The position numbers and the translations under genes are program-made. From Podarcis bocagei (Eukaryota), in assembly GCA_964188305.1 (NCBI GenBank), contig OZ076894.1: a stretch of DNA of 64,000 bases. The stretch is one strand, 5' to 3'. The notes under the pieces are model-generated. The model was given only the letters and a program-made list of their open reading frames with translations. It was not told where the DNA came from and did no database searches. This document shows, in pieces, positions 1,152 through 9,500 of the stretch. Each line of letters begins with the position of its first letter. Position 1 is the stretch's first letter.

Positions 1152-1203
1152 CCAAACAGGCAACATCAAAACCATGTTCCTCCCTGTGTTCTACGTAAAC
1201 GAG
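1152..1203 (+). CDS. SCARB2: SCARB2 third-last coding exon (52 nt)
   Basis: ttttag|C CAA ACA GGC...AAC GAG|gtaggc; QTGNIKTMFLPVFYVNE resembles human ETGDIRTMVFPVMYLNE. Confidence 0.92.
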
Positions 1204-4200
1204 GTAGGCGTTTTTGCAAAACAGCTTCTGCTGCTTTACCGCTAACCCAGCGTGTTGTGACAGGTGGAACTTAGCTGGGGGGGGGCTATATACTGCAAGG
1301 AGAATTGTTGGGGAATAATGTGGATTCTGAAATCTCAGAAGCTAGTGAAGCTGCAGAATAACCTTTACTTGAAGAGGGAGAGAATGCTTTAGTGAAGGGG
1401 TTAGCAAACTTTTTCAGCAGGGGGCCAGTCCACTGTGTCTCAGAACTTGTGGGGGGCTGGACTATATTTTGGAGGGAGAAAAAATAAATGAATTCCTGTG
1501 CCCCACAAATAACCCAGAGATGCATTTTAAATAAAAGGACACATTCTACTCATGTAAAAACACACTGATTCCCGGACCGTCTGCGGGCCAGATTGAGAAG
1601 GCGATTGGGCTGGATCCGGCCCCCGGGCCTTAGTTTGCCTACCCATGCTTTAGTGCATAGATCATTAGTCTTCCTTGCCTTGATTGCCAAAAACAGAATA
1701 AATATGACTTCGTCTACTTGCACGATTTGCATATGTTGTGGAATTCAGTGCCCTTTGTGTGGAATTTGCATTGCCTACGTGTGGAGCTTTACGAGGGTGG
1801 TGGTGGGTTACTGAACTTCCAGGAAGACCTCCCTCTGATGTTATTGTTATGTTACTCAGCATACAATTAGAGAGCAGTGCAGGGAAGGGAAGAACACGGC
1901 TGCAAAATTTGAACTCCCCTGCAACAGCAAAAATATATTGGGTGTGGTCCTGAGAACAGAAGACACTGAAAGGGTTCAGGGTATTAGCTTACAGATTTAG
2001 CTTAGGTTGCAGGGGCAAATTTACAAGCAAGAGAAGCTTGATGATTATGTAATTAGCATACCGCTTAATGCCAGGATAGTGTCTAAGTGGATCACAAAAC
2101 ATAAAAACCAATTGTGCAACATGGGTGTAATACAGATGGATTAGAAACGCACCGTCATTAAAATAAAAAAATGAAGCAATCTCAATAAAATGTTTATGTC
2201 CACGGGGAAAAAAGTACAAGTCTGCACAAATTACAAGGTATTTTACTTGCTGTAATTGAATGTGCCTTTCAAGCCGAATTTCCTTCTGGGAGGGATGGGG
2301 CAGTGGTGCCCTTTGAGTTTCAGTGCAGCCCATCCCATTAACACATTAATGCAGTGATTAAAACAGCAGACTCAGATCGATGGAATGTCTGTATGAGAAG
2401 GTTGCCTTCAAGAGCCGGCAGAATGCCCATGCAGATGAGGCCTTTCATATTTCAGCAGCGAGCTCATTCCACAGCACCAGTTGGAGACACAATCGAAATC
2501 AGCCTTCCCCAGTCTGCTTGCCCTCCCGACTTTTTTGACTACATCTGCCTTCAGCCCCACTCAGGCAGCATAGCAAGTCGGAAACATCTGGCAGGCAGCA
2601 TGTCAACAGAGGCTGATCTGAATCATATTTGACTAGAGTCGTGTGGATAACAGAATGAATCTATGCCTCTCTCCTCCCTGCCCCCTTTTTATCCTCCAGA
2701 GTGTCGTGCTGGACAAAGCATCCGTGGCAAAACTGAAGACTGTTCTTCTTGAAACTGCGGTGATGACCAGTGTCCCCTATATCATCATGGCACTAGGGAT
2801 TCTTTTTGGTGCTCTGTTTGTTGCGCTTGTCTGCAAGCCCTTACGGGCGAGGGAGGAGGTAAGGTAGCGCTTGGATCTGTCCTTTTCCCTTTGCTTTCTG
2901 TACCTCTCTTATTTTGTTCTTTTTTCATAAAAATCAAAACCTTTCCCTTTTTTAAAATTTCCTCTTGATTTTGACTTACTTCCTTCATGCAATCACCAGA
3001 AAGATTTTGTGTTTTTGTTTTATTCCTTTCTCTGTTGTCTTCCTTTTATTTGTTTCTTCCGAAATGCTGGTTCTAGGGCAGCGAAGGTTTAGTAGACACA
3101 GAGTAAGCACCTTTCCGCAAACGTTCAGCAGCTGTCTTAAGACACATGGTAAGATCAGCAAAGTCCATATCTCTTTCCTAATCCTCCTTCCTAGCTACAA
3201 TCCTTATTCACTAAGGAGAAACGGTTAGCTAGTGAACTCCAAAGTCTTAAGGTCTGTTTCACACATGTATGATGACCATCATTCATTGACGGTAATGACT
3301 TGCACATTTGCATGACTAATTAATTGCCAACGGTAGTTTTTTTCACATAGCCCAATATCAACTCAAACTGGGAATGGATGGATCAGTCAATATATTCCCC
3401 ATCTGTGGCAGTTTGCAATGCTCATCTTGTTCCCTTTTTGACTTAAAAAAAATCAATATGAAGATCACCTTTGTATACACATTTAAATACTTACTTTATC
3501 ACAAAATGTGTATTTTTCGCTCTGCGTGCAAGTGCATTTTGCCCTAAAGCACACATCTTTTGAGTCGAGAACTACAAACACATGCATGTGTGAACCAGCC
3601 TTAAGGTCAACACTCCTCGCTTGAAGGTCTTGGCAATCTCACTCCTGCAGCCCAAGCAAGGTTGGGACGTTTAGGCTGCGGTTCTTACCCCACTTACTAG
3701 GAGTGAGCCCCATTGAATTCAGCGGGGCTTAACTTCTGAGTCAACGTAGTTTGAATGGCACCGTTGCTTGGCTGATTAGTCAAGTCGCCATGTGAGCATG
3801 TGTGTGCTTGCGAGAGAAAGCGAGAGAAGGGGATGCCCTTCTTAAGGTGATGTCCATTCAGACATCTGTGTGCTGTGGGTCAGGGCCCTAGCTCAGTGGT
3901 AGAGTATTTGCCAGGTCCAGTCCCCATCATCCGTAGGTGCAACTGCCAGTCAGTGCAGACATTCCTGAGTTGGATGAACTGTTGGTCTGACTGCAAGAGG
4001 CAGCTTCCTGTGTTGCTGTGTTCCCCTATTGAATAAGAAAGCGAGCGTGGTCTTTTTCCCTAAGCTAGAAATACAGCTTTCCTCATGTGTGGATTTAATT
4101 CACTGACTAAAATTCTTCTAGTTCTACTGGCCATTGACTGAAATAAATAATATATAATCCTAATCCTGTAACACCTTAGCTAGATTTCTTTAGTCAGGAA

Positions 4201-6509
4201 GAGTCCTAGTTACTGTTTTCTTCTTTTATTTTTATATACATTTTCTTTCATTCCTCCTTCCCCATTAATAATAATAATAATAATTTATTATTTGTACCCC
4301 GCCCATCTGGCTGGGTCTCCCTAGTCACTCTGGGTGGCTTCCAGCAAAGATTAAAATACATTAAAATGTCACTCATTAAAAACTTCCCTAAACAGGGTTG
4401 CCTTCAGATGTCTTCTAAATGTCAGGTAGTTGTTTATCTCTTTGACATCTGATGGGAGGGCGTTCCACAGAGCGGGCGCCACTACCGAGAAGACCCTCTG
4501 CCTGGTTCCCTGTAGCTTTGCTTCTCGCAGCGAGGGAACCGCCAGAAGGCCCTCGGCGCTGGACCTCAGCATCCGGGCAGAACGATGGGGGTGGAGATGC
4601 TCCTTCAGGTATACTGGGCCAAGGCCATTTAGGGCTTTGAAGGTCAGCACCAACACTTTGAATTGTGCTTGGAAACGTCCTGGGAGCCAGTGTAGATCTT
4701 TCAGGACCAGTATTATATGGTCCCGGGGGCCACTCCCAGTCACCAGTCTAGCTGCCGCATTCTGGATTAGTTGTAGTTTCCGGGTCACCTTCAAAGGGAG
4801 CCCCACATAGAGCGCATTGCAGTAGTCCAAGCGGGCGATAACTAGAGCATACGAGGCTGATTGACCCAACGTCTCCTTGCAACCATCATGGGCTAAGTGA
4901 GAATGTGAACCCAAGTCTCCCCAGTCCAAGTTGAGTACTTTGGAGCCCACCCTAGTTTGAAAGTTGGCGGAGGGATACCAGAGCGCTCCAGGAGTCTTTT
5001 CCCCACTCTGCCTGTTGTGCGGACTTCGTTTCTGATCAGGTTCTTGCAACCGCAAAAGTGAACCTGCTTCTGTGTTGGTGTGCGCCATGCGGCTTTGCTT
5101 GAGGTGTCCATCACGGTGGTGGGTTTTGTCCAAAACGAGAGAGAGAGGAAACAAGCAAGGGGTGTTGTTCTGTTGCTGGCCGGACATCGGTTTCTCAGTT
5201 GAACCTAGAGGCAGCATTACCCGGTGGGATGGAGCTGCAATCACTTCCGCTTCCCAGAAGCAAGAGCGGAAAGCAGTGGGGAGGTCAGCACAGTGCAGGT
5301 GCGCCAGCGGAAACCCTGGGTTGGCTCCACCAGTGCTTTCGCAGAAAGCGGCAGCGATTCTGCTTCGCCAGGTGAACCCCTTCTGCCCTGCTTCTCCCTG
5401 TCCTTCTCACTCTGCTCCCCCCGGAAGCAATTTTACCTACTGCGCTTATGGGTTAACTAAGAGACTGCATGGAACAGGGGTTGCCAAGTCTTGTGGCCAT
5501 GGTGATGGGTTTCGGGGAGTGGGGGGTGGGTATTGCCAGTTGTTTACTTTTATGTAAGAATTTTCAGTATGCAAAATGTGTCGAGTTTTTTGGGGGGCGG
5601 GCAGGCAACAACAGCTGGTTCTTATCATAGGAATGTTGAGGGTACAATTCCCAATTTGTCGATTGGTCGGGGAGGCTGGAAGATTTGTCCTTAATTTGGA
5701 TCCAAGATACATTCGAGGGCAGTACACTTCATCTAATGGAAAGTCATGTGATCTTGACTTACTTTCAGATTTCTCGGTTCGATGGTGGAGATGAAAACTT
5801 CCCCGCATGTAGAAATCTGACATATGAGGGAGGAGGCTAGACTTAAAAGCCTGTCCCTGGTGTGCTAATTTTCCACAAGCAGGGAGATAATTGCTATAAC
5901 TGGATATTCAAATGTGTGGTACCACACCTCCAGTCTGAAATGGTACAGTCTTTAGAACATGGTACCATGTGATTTATCGGCCCCATTAAGATGCACAACT
6001 TTTCAAAGGAAAACCTCTGACCATGACATGACAGATATCTAAGGTCATTTCCCTAAAAGCCATATACATCATATCCCTAGTGTAATTTTCCAAATATATA
6101 TGCTTGGCAGGGGGTTGGACTCGATGGCCCTTGTGGTCTATTCCAACTCTATGATTCTATGATCTCTTAAGGCATATACATAACACAGACTTCAACTAGT
6201 ATAGTGAAATTCTCTGCCCCCCCCCCCCAATTGTAATTCTGCAAGTGGAGCCTGGGGATCTCTTAATACTCAGCACCCACCCTAAACTACAAGTCCCAGA
6301 ATTCTTTGCAGGAAGCTGTGACAGTTTTACAGGTATAAAACCAAGACACTTCTACAGTGTAAGGGAAGCACATGCTGTATTTGTCAGCCTTGGATTGCAG
6401 TATTGATACCTGTCAGGATAGCACCTTTCAGTTCTGTGTTTGTCTTTCCTGCCTGTCTTAATTGCAGGCTTCCGAAGACGAGAGAGCGCCGCTCATCCGG
6501 ACATCGTGA
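1152..6509 (+). CDS. SCARB2: SCARB2/LIMP-2 (lysosome membrane protein 2), 3' part: join(1152..1203,2700..2858,6468..6509); 5' exons lie outside the window
   Basis: Spliced translation QTGNIKTMFLPVFYVNE-SVVLDKASVAKLKTVLLETAVMTSVPYIIMALGILFGALFVALVCKPLRAREE-ASEDERAPLIRTS* matches the LIMP-2 C-terminus (TM2 PYIIMALG, dileucine-type ERAPLI); all junctions GT-AG and in frame. Confidence 0.96.
1395..1647. mobile_element. hAT-type MITE
   Basis: Perfect 8-bp TSD CTTTAGTG (1387-1394, 1648-1655); related copies at 48218-48535 and ~50150-50429. Confidence 0.85.
2700..2858 (+). CDS. SCARB2: SCARB2 penultimate coding exon (159 nt, second TM helix)
   Basis: ctccag|AGT GTC...GAG GAG|gtaagg; hydrophobic PYIIMALGILFGALFVALVC. 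Confidence 0.96.
3077..3148 (+). CDS. SCARB2: Candidate SCARB2 alternative cassette exon encoding GSEGLVDTE* (stop 3104-3106)
   Basis: Long pyrimidine tract with no AG in 3004-3074, ttctag| acceptor, donors GA|gtaagc (3102) and ATG|gtaaga (3148); in frame with the upstream exon; no transcript evidence available. Confidence 0.4.
4266..4850 (-). mobile_element. L2-type LINE 3' fragment (ORF2 C-terminus)
   Basis: RLDYCNALYVGLP...LQLIQNAAARLV...LHWLP...FSVVAPALWNALP; (AAT)n tail. Confidence 0.9.
6468..6509 (+). CDS. SCARB2: SCARB2 last coding exon (ASEDERAPLIRTS*)
   Basis: ttgcag|GCT TCC GAA GAC GAG AGA GCG CCG CTC ATC CGG ACA TCG TGA; [DE]xxxL[LI] sorting motif. Confidence 0.95.
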   Translation, partial: ASEDERAPLIRTS

Positions 6510-9500
6510 CTCAATTTCCCCAGCAACAACAAGAACAACACTTTTCAGAAACGAGCTTAGTGATGACTGAACTATGCAAGCTGCTCTTAACTGCAACCAC
6601 TACGCTGTACAACAGTCTCGACCGTCTCCCCTGCACACTAATATATGTTAACATTCTGTTTCGGGTTTTGCGGCATTCAGGAAGGCTTTGCTTTGTGAAA
6701 AGTGGACTGCTGTTTAAGAGCGGAGGTTGCGGTACTGCTTTTTCTAAAAAGCTGGAACAAAGGCAACTTCCATTGTCTTCCGAGATTGCAAAAAGCAGTG
6801 TTCTAATATCCCTGTGTGGCTATAGACACCTGCACTGGTGTTCTCCCATTGACTCCCATGGGACTGTAGTAGTGTAGGTATCTGTGGATCGGCCCCTTTT
6901 CTTTGCCTGTTTGGCGGGCCATAGGAGTTTGTGTCAGTTGCAATGGGTCCGTTTTTATTTATTAGAATCACTAGGTACAATCCCGTCCTTCAGTAACTTG
7001 ACTTGCTGCCAGCCTCTCTGACATACCAGGCATTTTAGTTTCCTCCTTGTGTCCATTTTCACATTGCACAGCTGGGAATGTTTTGTCGGTCTAGCTAGCT
7101 CATGATCTTGATCCTACGTTGCAAAGGGAGATCCCCAGCCTCCATCACATTTTTCGCGGGTATGGCTGCAAAACTAACACAGCCCACCATTGTACCATAC
7201 TGCTCTGCATCCATTGGATCGATTTTGGGGTGGTTCCCCATGAATGCATACCTGTGAAAGTGACCTGGAGCCGGTCTAGCAGCGCCACTTGGGAGTCACA
7301 GATACCTGGTCCAGTGGGCTATTTTAAAAACGTGTCCAGTTCAGCACCTTTTAGGTGAATTGGTGTGTCTTCCCACCGCCCGCCATGCAAATGTTTTCTA
7401 AAAGCTGGTCTGTGGATAGAAAATGTTCCCCGAGAGCCGGCTCTCAAGTATTTGATAAGGAACACTAAGGGAGTGCATTTGAATCAGCACACCTGTAAAG
7501 ATCACTGATTGCTCTTTTTCCATGGGCTGCCTAAAACTGGCAAAGACGCGGCCCTCTTGCATTCTCTGTGAGGTCTCCCTACAGACCAAACCAAGCCCTT
7601 GACATGCGACCTGGAAGGGGCTAGGAAATGGCAACGCTGTCCTTTTGCCCTCAACTCTGCCAGCAGGAGCCTCCATCACTGCAAAAATGCTGAAAGTGCA
7701 GGCAGGTAGAAGCAACCACCAACAGCATCCTTGCTGGCTGCAGCCAACCTTACACTGCCCTCCCAAAAAACCCAGGCATTTTGGAATGGGCAGAGAGAGC
7801 TGCCTTAGCTTGATCAGCTATTGGCAATGGACCTGATCTCTCTTGCCAAGCCAGCCTAGAGTTGGTGTAACAACAACTCGCAGCTTTTATTGCCATCCTG
7901 TTCTGCGGTGGCAGGAGGGCTCTGTATGCAGTGGTGGTTTTGCTGCTTGATTCAGCCCCGCTGCTCCCAGCCTGGAGTTGCAATTGCTTCCCTAGTTTCT
8001 TTAGACATAATCTCCGAATAAGCCAGTTTCTCAGATCTAGCAGCATGTAGCATTTTAAGAGACCTCTCAGTCAGAGGCATCTAGCTGTGCCAACCCTCCC
8101 TTCCTGTCTGCTTATCTGGAAAGAAACCTTTGAGCCTCCCTGAGTGTAAAAAGGCACAAACTCATATTGTGAGGTCTGGAAGAGGAAAGGGCTGCATCGC
8201 CTAATGGGGAGTTTATGGCACCTGAATCAGAAGCCTATGGAAAAAGAGCTGCAATGTTGTCTTGCACAGGTGTGCATACTGGAGAAGAAGGGAAGAGTTG
8301 GATTGCAAGCTACCTTCGCTGGAGAGAAGGTAGCTCCAACCACTAGGTCAAACCAACCTATGTTACCTAATGACCAGCTGAGCCTCTTCTGAGAGGCCCA
8401 GCTCATACTTAAATAGGTATAGCAAGCAACATAACCTGCCAGTGTTCTGTACACTTTTTCTTCCTTATGTAATCTGCATTGCTTCTGGCATTACCTAAAA
8501 TCTCATTCTGCCTGCTGACCAAATGCCCCATTACTATATTTAAAGATCTCTTATTGATTCTTCAAAGTAACATGATGTAACTATCTCCCCCCCCCCATCC
8601 AAACGGCCCATTATTGAGTTGATTGCATTTCCCCCTCCCATTGGAAAAGCAATTATTACCTGAAGCTGCAGTAAGAAGGCAGTTTCCCCATCTATTTTTG
8701 GAGTGGTTCTCAAGACACACAACTTTCTGTCATTCATAGTGTTCACTAAGAACAGTTACTCAATTTATTTTGGTTGTGCTGGTGCAGGAACCATAGAATA
8801 TGTTGCTGGAATTCCTTTTCTGGAGCAGCCGAAAGACCCATCTGGTCCACAGTTCCATTTCCAGCGGTGGTTTCACCAGTGGCCTTCCAGGTGTTGTCCA
8901 ACTCCTGATTTCATTAAAGACCTCAAGTCTATGTAGGAGAAAGAGATGATTCTCCCATTACTAGAACCTGAGAGTCATCTCATGGAAGGAAGCTGCCCCG
9001 TGGTTGGCCAATGGAGACTGCAGGCATTGCAGATTGATGTGCATCCTTAATTGTTTCCTTGGAAGCTTGTGCAAATTATTTCCCTCAGTACATTTACAAA
9101 ATTATAGCATGAACGTTTACACTTCCAGCAGTTGTCACACAGCATTGCTTAAAACAACTGGAAGGCAGCAGGGAGGCTGCTTGTATATATTTCTGAGGGT
9201 ACAAAGGAGCAAAAGATAACTTAGAACCATGAATAGTATTAGTATAGTATTATTTCTGATAGATGCGCCTCTACAGCTAGGTCATTGGCTCAGATCACCT
9301 TTCAGTGTTCATTTATACTTTAAAAGGAATTCCAAGTTCTGAAATTGCCCCTTTGATGCTGCCTCTCAGTCTTAGTATTATGGGGTTGAGTAGTGTTTAG
9401 GCCCTCCTAACAGTGCAAAGCCTCCCAGGCTGCTTAAGTTATGTTATGTGGTAGTTGGGAAAGATGGCACTCCAGGTTTTGCTTCACTACGACTCAACGT

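Follow-up and report, generated by a model that had tools for sequence, protein, structure and literature searches.

An alternative penultimate exon of SCARB2 that changes the cytoplasmic tail of LIMP-2 in sauropsids

Positions 3077–3148 of the Podarcis bocagei window (the whole 64,000-nt stretch of DNA that was analysed) are read here, with a probability of about 0.85, as a genuine and regulated cassette exon, in the penultimate position of SCARB2, that swaps the ERAPLI tail of LIMP-2 for the peptide GSEGLVDTE. The splicing of this exon, its variable inclusion, its peptide, its conservation and its presence in public annotation are all direct observations. Glucocerebrosidase reaches lysosomes with LIMP-2 as its carrier, and the ERAPLI tail of LIMP-2 is a textbook example of a dileucine signal.

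The SCARB2 locus and its alternative splicing

The gene in the window is SCARB2, encoding LIMP-2 of the CD36 family, as judged from peptide matches to orthologues that take in the transmembrane (TM) segment and the ERAPLI tail. The second-TM exon is 100% identical to the corresponding part of two Podarcis raffonei LIMP-2 models, isoforms X1 (P0037) and X2 (P0143), and together with the last exon it gives a peptide identical to the C-terminus of isoform X1. The CD36 domain (Pfam PF01130) is present in full-length relatives; one king-cobra protein model (P0028) has CD36 and nucleoporin p54 domains fused, NUP54 being the neighbour that would be expected downstream of SCARB2. The features discussed below are as follows.

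1152..1203, + strand: upstream SCARB2 coding exon (..QTGNIKTMFLPVFYVNE), peptide matching Podarcis raffonei LIMP-2 (P0037)
2700..2858, + strand: second-transmembrane (TM) exon, phase 0, ending ...CKPLRAREE, donor GAG/gtaagg
2870..3076, + strand: tract rich in pyrimidines (73% C/T), without AG from 3004 on, closing with the acceptor ttctag
3077..3148, + strand: alternative cassette exon, 72 nt, RNA joints 2858>3077 and 3148>6468, conserved in sauropsids
3077..3106, + strand: cassette coding part, GSEGLVDTE plus TAA (3104–3106), identical with the end of the RefSeq isoform X2 protein in Podarcis raffonei and Zootoca vivipara
3103..3108, + strand: donor-like gtaagc overlapping the stop codon (GA/gtaagc at 3102/3103), apparently unused
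3107..3148, + strand: cassette untranslated remainder, 42 nt from the stop to the last exon junction
3149..3156, + strand: cassette donor gtaagatc, in use (joint 3148>6468); CA(T/C)G/GTAAG invariant in all aligned sauropsids
3309..3320, + strand: TGCATG (RBFOX-type) then ACTAAT (QKI-type), 161–172 nt downstream of the cassette, a motif match only
6468..6509, + strand: last exon, coding start; ASEDERAPLIRTS plus stop gives the canonical ERAPLI tail, 3'UTR if the cassette is included

When the sequence was rechecked, the splice sites, reading frame and motifs of the preliminary description all lay where it had placed them. The cassette acceptor, ttctag/GGC at 3076/3077, closes a stretch that is 73% pyrimidine over 2870–3074, and a dinucleotide scan of 2859–3074 finds AG at positions 2862, 2866, 2998 and 3002 only, confirming the claim that 3004–3074 is without it. 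The donor in use, ATG/gtaaga at 3148/3149, lies 42 nt past the TAA stop.

RNA from four runs was available, one (X39) as stranded raw reads and three (X3, X10 and X15) as contigs only. The RNA of X39 comes from a congener and not from the window individual, its reads carrying an L>F change at 2843 as in P. muralis, and X15 is a different species from the other runs. RNA depth covers the TM exon in all four. In X39, the junction 2858>3077 is crossed by 104 reads with 44 start positions and the junction 3148>6468 by 196 reads with 60 start positions, against six reads for the skipping junction 2858>6468, which puts cassette inclusion at about 96%. The intron bins adjoining the cassette have an RNA depth of 0, and the last exon, joined at 6468 from both 2858 and 3148, has depth running on to at least position 7000. 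The contigs of X3 hold the included form only (depth 493 and 593), those of X10 mostly the skipped form (81 skipped vs 9 included), and those of X15 the skipped form alone. Inclusion thus differs strongly by sample, from about 96% in X39 to a minor share in X10 and none in X15. A loose end before 2698 in X3 corresponds to the last 30 bases of the upstream exon, so 1203 is spliced to 2700. The cassette with its donor at 3148 had been predicted from the sequence, along with junction reads at 2858>3077 and 3148>6468. Both joints are present in several runs of Podarcis congener RNA, which for Podarcis already contradicts the refuting outcome of an absence of such reads. With joints for inclusion on either side of the exon and for its skipping all in the RNA, 3077–3148 is a true alternative cassette exon.

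A second donor, at 3102, had been proposed to yield a 26-nt microexon that shifts the frame of the last exon. The donor and the predicted frameshifted peptide are there as described, but none of the four RNA runs holds a single joint from it, 3102>6468 included, and the GTAAG at this position is not conserved in the gecko-like, cobra or bird sequence in the alignment. The microexon variant was therefore rejected. The downstream motifs also lie where they had been noted, TGCATG at 3309–3314 and ACTAAT at 3315–3320. The string TTTGCATG is common to Podarcis (+161) and the gecko-like locus (+114); downstream of the cassette there is AGCATG alone in the bird, at +238, and no TGCATG in the cobra. 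Among these loci ACTAAY occurs in Podarcis only, and a 300-nt window drawn at random from the last intron contains TGCATG in 26% of cases. Conservation of the RBFOX/QKI motifs is weak in this comparison, and the control by these factors in muscle and neurons that the preliminary description had proposed is a putative one.

Conservation and annotation

How widely is the exon shared? In blastn comparisons of the last intron, the cassette alone matches the loci of a gecko-like reptile, a cobra and a bird, with E-values of 3e-10, 2e-5 and 1e-3 that are independent of any profile. An nhmmer profile matches the same three at E 1e-27 to 1e-28, values to be read in the knowledge that these sequences helped build it. 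Acceptor, stop and donor are all kept in the sauropsid alignment, the acceptor as TTC(T/C)AG in the gecko-like, cobra and bird loci, and identity is 0.52–0.77 in the cassette exon vs 0.34–0.46 in the flanking intron. Cassette lengths are 72, 73, 71 and 69 nt across the aligned lineages. The differences between lineages are multiples of 3 before the stop and not multiples of 3 after it, and the untranslated 3' part is conserved nearly as well as the coding part. The cobra has two copies of the cassette, a and b, of which b is frameshifted. Snake annotations hold one isoform only, so that use of the exon in snakes is a prediction.

From these sequence comparisons, lizards, snakes, turtles, crocodilians and birds all share the exon, the turtle and crocodilian support consisting of protein models only and the DNA comparison covering the gecko-like reptile, the cobra and the bird. 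By the same comparisons, it goes back at least to the ancestor shared by lizards, turtles, crocodilians and birds. Outside the sauropsids, the nhmmer profile (E up to 1000) did not detect the cassette in the last introns of echidna, Tasmanian devil or Xenopus, nor in partial introns on rodent-like and fish/amphibian contigs, its one match there being a meaningless stretch of 10 bases; a scan for the pattern of an acceptor, a short L[IVL] open reading frame and a donor gave only unrelated repeat-borne matches. The tail-exon event thus appears limited to sauropsids, an absence elsewhere that is provisional, since the scan took in only three introns in full and a strongly diverged exon could have escaped it. 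Four proteins among the relatives, P0009, P0011, P0012 and P0014, look human; the mammals compared for the cassette are echidna, Tasmanian devil and the rodent-like contig. The conservation proposed as a check on the exon is therefore borne out for lizards, snakes and birds, while in the mammal introns scanned the cassette was not detected. An origin of the cassette by duplication of the last exon was considered and rejected for lack of evidence, the local alignment of the two exons not being significant against shuffled sequences (P ~0.06 in lizard and 0.28 in bird).

The cassette isoform is already known as a gene model, namely RefSeq/Ensembl isoform X2, in Podarcis and about 20 other sauropsids. 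The models include P. raffonei XP_053260373.1, P. muralis XP_028599781, Zootoca vivipara XP_060134354 and Anolis carolinensis XP_062837293. The P. raffonei entry, "lysosome membrane protein 2 isoform X2", has 478 aa and ends exactly in GSEGLVDTE, and both it and the Zootoca model end exactly in ...REEGSEGLVDTE, which is the TM exon of the window plus the cassette. Exon and tail are the same in X2 and in the window, with no structural difference between them, and the X2 entries are automatic models. In a literature search, no paper turned up that describes a LIMP-2/SCARB2 tail isoform, profiles it by tissue or tests its function. A search by sequence words, with the 53 aa of the TM exon as query, brought up a single genomic read-through fragment and no tail derived from a transcript.

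The alternative tail and its possible meanings

With the exon skipped, the TM exon joins the last exon, giving a 482-aa protein with the tail ...REE-ASEDERAPLIRTS, in which the canonical ERAPLI signal, of the [DE]xxxL[LI] type, is unchanged. With the exon included, translation stops inside the cassette, the tail reads ...REE-GSEGLVDTE, and the old coding end becomes 3'UTR. The included form, of 478 aa, ends in ...CKPLRAREEGSEGLVDTE, which is the C-terminus of XP_053260373.1. Nonsense-mediated decay usually requires a stop more than 50–55 nt upstream of the last exon-exon junction. The preliminary description had placed this stop less than 50 nt from that junction, and the measured distance is 42 nt in the window lizard, 43 nt in the gecko-like locus, 41 nt in the bird and 42 nt in cobra copy a, a spacing of 41–43 nt in four lineages; in the frameshifted cobra copy b it is 56 nt. 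Because of this short distance, the included mRNA should escape decay, with which its high abundance in X39 is consistent. The exon behaves as coding sequence.

What does the new tail retain? The comparison covers 24 tails, 21 from annotated sauropsid models, with the consensus xRE[VG]L[IV][DE]xE, and three derived from genomes. All 24 have an L[IV] pair (LV in Podarcis), and in 22 of them it stands three residues from the C-terminus, as in the canonical LIRTS; in the other two it stands at four. The pattern R-x-x-L-I-x-x-x-stop is common to the cassette tail and the last-exon tail. Compared with canonical ERAPLI, the alternative tail thus shares the position of the pair and lacks the acidic residue at -4 in Podarcis, where it is Gly, and in 19 of the 24 species, which have Gly, Ala, Val or Ile. 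An acidic -4 residue, and with it the strict [DE]xxxL[LIV], is found in the remaining five (Sceloporus, Pogona, Gekko, cobra and the gecko-like reptile). In LIMP-II, Glu(-4), Leu and Ile alone are absolutely required for binding to AP-1 and AP-3 (Janvier et al. 2003, PMC2173715). Since this Glu(-4) is replaced by Gly in Podarcis and lost in most species, direct AP-3/AP-1 sorting of the included isoform to lysosomes is probably weakened or altered, and from the tail sequences we infer that the isoform alters how clathrin adaptors read the LIMP-2 tail. The invariance of the L[IV] pair, on the other hand, suggests that the new tail retains some sorting or binding function; the pair and its flanking acidic residues could, on prediction, still make up a working dileucine-type signal. 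The earlier claim that the exon removes the dileucine signal holds in that ERAPLI is lost on inclusion, but an L[IV] pair is present in every one of the new tails, and by its sequence "signal removed" is too simple a description of the Podarcis cassette tail.

Other readings of the exon can be set against that of a regulated tail switch. Introns contain many AG...GT pairs, and eight GTRAG sites lie in 2859–6467, the TM-exon donor among them, which would fit a chance pseudoexon or splicing noise of no biological role. Inclusion at about 96% in X39, and splice sites, frame and stop kept from lizards to birds, speak so strongly against this that it deserves almost no credence; junction reads, alignment and tail pattern already refute it. 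It would also be conceivable that inclusion mainly lowers the output of canonical LIMP-2, the cassette acting as a regulatory "poison" exon with a functionless truncated product. The in-frame stop would fit, as would an untranslated 3' part conserved nearly as well as the coding part, which is expected if RNA-level signals matter. Against such a role stand the 41–43 nt between stop and last junction in four lineages, under the 50–55 nt limit, the dominance of included mRNA in X39, the restriction of indels before the stop, but not after it, to multiples of 3, and the L[IV] pair, whose invariance is a sign that selection acts on the peptide. We regard this role as improbable.

The question of whether the new tail leads away from the lysosome at all is a closer one. 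The same isoform might have a tail equivalent to the canonical one for lysosomal delivery, its L[IV] pair in an acidic EE/E context working as a signal of the dileucine type. In that case the exon would not take LIMP-2 out of the lysosome but would adjust something else, for example which adaptor is preferred, how fast the protein is internalised, a binding partner or a site of modification. The presence of the pair in every tail, its LIRTS-like spacing from the end of the protein in 22 of them and the fit of five tails to the strict pattern are in keeping with this. Moreover, L-V pairs work in the same class of signal in the Nef variants cited in PMC2173715, and the ExxxLV of Vpu is reported as another working L-V signal. 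The lack of a conserved acidic -4 residue argues the other way, for mutation of Glu(-4) in LIMP-II abolished both AP-1 and AP-3 binding (PMC2173715), and full equivalence seems to us a minority view, though one with some weight, next to the regulated tail switch with altered adaptor reading.

Relation to known tail switches and significance

Tail exchange by splicing has precedents. LAMP-2A, -2B and -2C, forms of another lysosomal membrane protein, use alternative 3' exons to obtain short tails with different trafficking or function, and these are terminal exons that exclude one another and include the code for the transmembrane segment; in LIMP-2 X2, by comparison, only the last 9–13 residues change, by way of a cassette exon. 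In the CD36-family paralogue SCARB1, the choice of a penultimate exon alters the C-terminal cytoplasmic tail, the end that binds adaptors, giving SR-BI or SR-BII, and in mouse liver this choice is set by RBFOX2 (PMC9771820). The parallel with SR-BI/SR-BII that had been drawn from the sequence is a loose one: the outcome in the paralogue is a similar tail swap, but SR-BII arises when exon 12 is skipped and reading continues into the last exon, whereas LIMP-2 X2 arises by inclusion, which brings in a premature stop and leaves a tail of nine residues.

As a discovery the exon is modest, since annotation pipelines already model X2. What is added here is the splicing read support, a view of how widely the exon is conserved, the L[IV] pair common to all the tails and the rejection of the 26-nt microexon. 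The outcome is a deeply conserved isoform, dominant in one sample, that drops ERAPLI and carries a Leu-Ile/Val pair at equal distance from the C-terminus, and the exon amounts to a natural experiment from which one could learn how the context of the tail determines the choice of adaptor. A bolder reading, which we hold tentatively and think somewhat doubtful, is that sauropsids, and not mammals or frogs, have kept another LIMP-2 isoform for ~280 million years, with a tail that is unable to use the classical ERAPLI/AP-3 route, and that this isoform is the main form in some tissues. If so, a large share of the LIMP-2 in the cells concerned would reside outside lysosomes, at the cell surface, as the preliminary description had tentatively proposed, or in other endosomes, or would arrive in lysosomes via another adaptor. 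The delivery of glucocerebrosidase and any roles as a surface receptor would then be affected, and the invariant L[IV]xxE-COOH would be an undescribed tail signal. The exon also suggests a function of LIMP-2 in reptiles and birds that is missing in mammals.

SCARB2 cassette exon and its transcripts

The last intron of Podarcis bocagei SCARB2 contains a 72-nt cassette exon (window 3077–3148) that provides LIMP-2 with an alternative tail: skipping gives the tail with ERAPLI (isoform X1), and inclusion gives GSEGLVDTE (isoform X2). The upstream, second-transmembrane and last exons match Podarcis LIMP-2 at every residue. The 218 nt of intron leading up to the cassette are pyrimidine-rich (73% in 2870–3074), with no AG from 3004 to 3074. 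When the window was read and its pieces translated, the coordinates, splice sites, frame and motifs of the preliminary description all proved correct.

Features around the cassette (plus strand)
1152–1203: upstream SCARB2 exon; peptide matches Podarcis LIMP-2
2700–2858: second-transmembrane exon, read and translated; phase 0, ends ...CKPLRAREE, donor GAG/gtaagg
3077: cassette acceptor ttctag/G; translated frame opens, peptide GSEGLVDTE
3102/3103: donor-like GA/gtaagc, overlapping the cassette stop codon
3104–3106: cassette stop codon, TAA
3148/3149: strong cassette donor ATG/gtaaga, 42 nt 3' of the stop
3309–3314: TGCATG, downstream of the cassette
3315–3320: ACTAAT, downstream of the cassette
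6468: start of the last exon, encoding ASEDERAPLIRTS and a stop

Words from the cassette region occur in many small, transcriptome-sized runs, and four of these, from four studies, were mapped on window 2600–7000.

Cassette splicing in four RNA runs (run; material; included; skipped)
X39 (organism A); stranded raw RNA reads; 104 reads 2858>3077 (44 start positions), 196 reads 3148>6468 (60 start positions); 6 reads 2858>6468
X3 (organism A); contigs; depth 493 and 593; none
X10 (organism A); contigs; depth 9; depth 81
X15 (organism B); contigs; none; depth 30, on a 4362-nt contig

Both predicted junctions, 2858>3077 and 3148>6468, are present (X39 reads; X3 and X10 contigs). Cassette inclusion in X39 is about 96%, with a depth of about 105 in the cassette bin against 0 in the intron bins on both sides, and first mates are 100% minus-strand, as expected for plus-strand RNA. 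Since the balance of the two forms differs across the four runs, inclusion varies strongly between samples. A 26-nt microexon using the donor at 3102 had also been proposed; no joint from 3102 occurs in the mapped region in any of the four runs, so this variant is without support and is rejected. At 2843, organism A carries A>C (Leu to Phe) relative to the window, the state found in Podarcis muralis, so the RNA data are those of a congener. Of the listed differences (a further 352, less well supported, are not among them), none falls in 3075–3189 and eight fall in 3190–3291.

In two segments of the last intron, 4217–4951 and 5981–6274, both strands have RNA/contig depth hundreds-fold above the gene's own, and loose ends are frequent at the segment borders; the segments are probably pieces of high-copy transposable elements whose transcripts come from elsewhere in the genome. 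An (AAT)n microsatellite is present at about 800–850, and the stretch at about 130–500, which ends in a tRNA-like segment, resembles a squamate tRNA-derived SINE in antisense orientation.

Conservation and existing annotation

The transmembrane exon served to find genomic loci for comparison: L001 in a close relative, L002 in a gecko-like reptile, L003–L005 in a bird and L006 in the cobra Naja naja. Blastn matches to the window intron were confined to the cassette, and the alignment keeps the acceptor TTC(T/C)AG/G, the core GGTTTA(G/A)TAGA, the TAA stop and the donor CA(T/C)G/GTAAG. The cassette measures 72 nt in the window (GSEGLVDTE), 73 nt in the gecko-like reptile (ARGLVEPSP), 71 nt in the bird (GGEVLIDSD) and 69 nt in the cobra (GKGLIDPQ), with indels that are multiples of three 5' of the stop, but not 3' of it. 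Identity to the window is 0.52–0.77 in the cassette versus 0.34–0.46 in the flanking intron. Judging from the alignment, the cassette is old and behaves like coding sequence. The untranslated 42 nt after the stop (3107–3148) reach 0.52–0.65, almost equal to the coding part, with short invariant blocks (GCAA, GCTG, CAYG), and may hold splicing enhancers or an RNA element. A cassette profile gave no meaningful match in echidna, Tasmanian devil or Xenopus (complete last introns) or in a rodent-like and a fish/amphibian contig (partial introns). The cassette, conserved in all major sauropsid lineages and apparently missing from mammals and a frog, thus looks sauropsid-specific, its absence elsewhere being based on few genomes. 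In the comparison proposed across squamates, birds and mammals, 3077–3148 was found conserved in the gecko-like, cobra and bird loci, but not in the mammal introns examined. An origin by last-exon duplication was without statistical support.

The cobra protein, used in a word search, retrieved LIMP-2 models of many reptiles and birds as isoforms X1 (482 aa) and X2 (478 aa), the four-residue gap being exactly that between a 13-aa and a 9-aa tail. Podarcis raffonei XP_053260373.1 and Zootoca vivipara XP_060134354.1 end in ...CKPLRAREEGSEGLVDTE, and Podarcis muralis XP_028599781 in ...CKPFRAREEGSEGLVDTE; the cassette-type tail is also modelled in Hemicordylus, Varanus, Rhineura, Sceloporus, Elgaria, Salvator, Pogona, Anolis and Gekko, four turtles, alligator and four birds (Calypte, Anas, Rissa, Zonotrichia). 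Cassette and isoform are already in public annotation; the cassette, though real, is therefore no addition to the known gene models. Literature searches aimed at isoform X2 found no paper describing or testing it.

Naja naja (GCA_009733165.1, CM019151.1) has two near-identical copies of the SCARB2 3' half, at 35.6–36.1 kb and 59.7–60.2 kb, annotated as a single 775-aa protein (P0002); the duplication could have arisen during assembly or could be a genuine tandem one. In copy b, loss of 1 nt at the cassette start shifts the frame to GKV*. Crotalus adamanteus LIMP-2 (P0027, 493 aa) carries 12 additional in-frame residues, LGVFTYSWERNK, between the transmembrane and canonical last exons; they are unrelated to the cassette and may reflect another alternative splice choice in this intron in vipers, or a model error. 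Enhydra lutris isoform X2 (P0073, 480 aa) has an extra SQ precisely at the junction of the transmembrane and last exons, which points to another acceptor close by in a mammal. The Ophiophagus hannah protein P0028 (848 aa), labelled "Nucleoporin p54, partial", has a CD36 domain and nucleoporin domains; it is probably a mis-merged SCARB2–NUP54 model, which would fit adjacency of the two genes.

Possible function of the alternative tail

Could the cassette be a chance pseudoexon or a decay-targeted "poison" exon? The former is excluded by the RNA junctions and by splice sites and a stop conserved across lineages. A poison exon would fit the early stop, but is unlikely: the stop lies consistently less than 50 nt from the last junction, as the preliminary description noted for the window, at 41–43 nt in four lineages (56 nt in the frameshifted cobra copy b). 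Moreover, the included mRNA can predominate (X39), and alignment and tail comparison place the peptide under coding-type constraint.

Does inclusion remove the dileucine signal, as first proposed? In our reading, the canonical ERAPLI signal is lost. LIMP-II binding of AP-1 and AP-3 has an absolute requirement limited to Glu(-4), Leu and Ile (Janvier et al. 2003, PMC2173715); the acidic -4 residue that defines [DE]xxxL[LI] occurs in 5 of 24 alternative tails, with Gly in Podarcis, and direct AP-3/AP-1 sorting of the included isoform is probably weakened or changed. On the other hand, the alternative tails (consensus x-R-E-[V/G]-L-[I/V]-[D/E]-[P/S]-E) retain a Leu-Ile or Leu-Val pair in 24/24 sequences, three residues from the C-terminus in 22/24, as in canonical ...PLIRTS. 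Such an invariant pair would be unexpected for a tail whose sole role is to lack a signal, and the alternative tail probably retains its own role in sorting or binding. The original observation is thus borne out, and its interpretation in part.

The analogy drawn with SCARB1 is fair in outcome, but SCARB1 obtains its alternative tail by exon skipping, whereas SCARB2 does so by inclusion with an early stop. The SCARB1 switch in mouse liver is under RBFOX2 control (PMC9771820). For the cassette, RBFOX/QKI control is a guess from motifs: downstream UGCAUG is common to the window and the gecko-like locus only, ACUAAY is limited to Podarcis, and of 300-nt windows drawn at random from the last SCARB2 intron, a quarter contain TGCATG.

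To the public models this analysis adds direct read evidence, with near-complete inclusion in one sample, conservation in all major sauropsid lineages with an NMD-safe stop spacing, the invariant L[IV] pair, which tempers the idea of a removed signal, and rejection of the microexon. Isoform X2 is a reasonable lead for work on lysosomal membrane protein sorting in non-mammalian amniotes.
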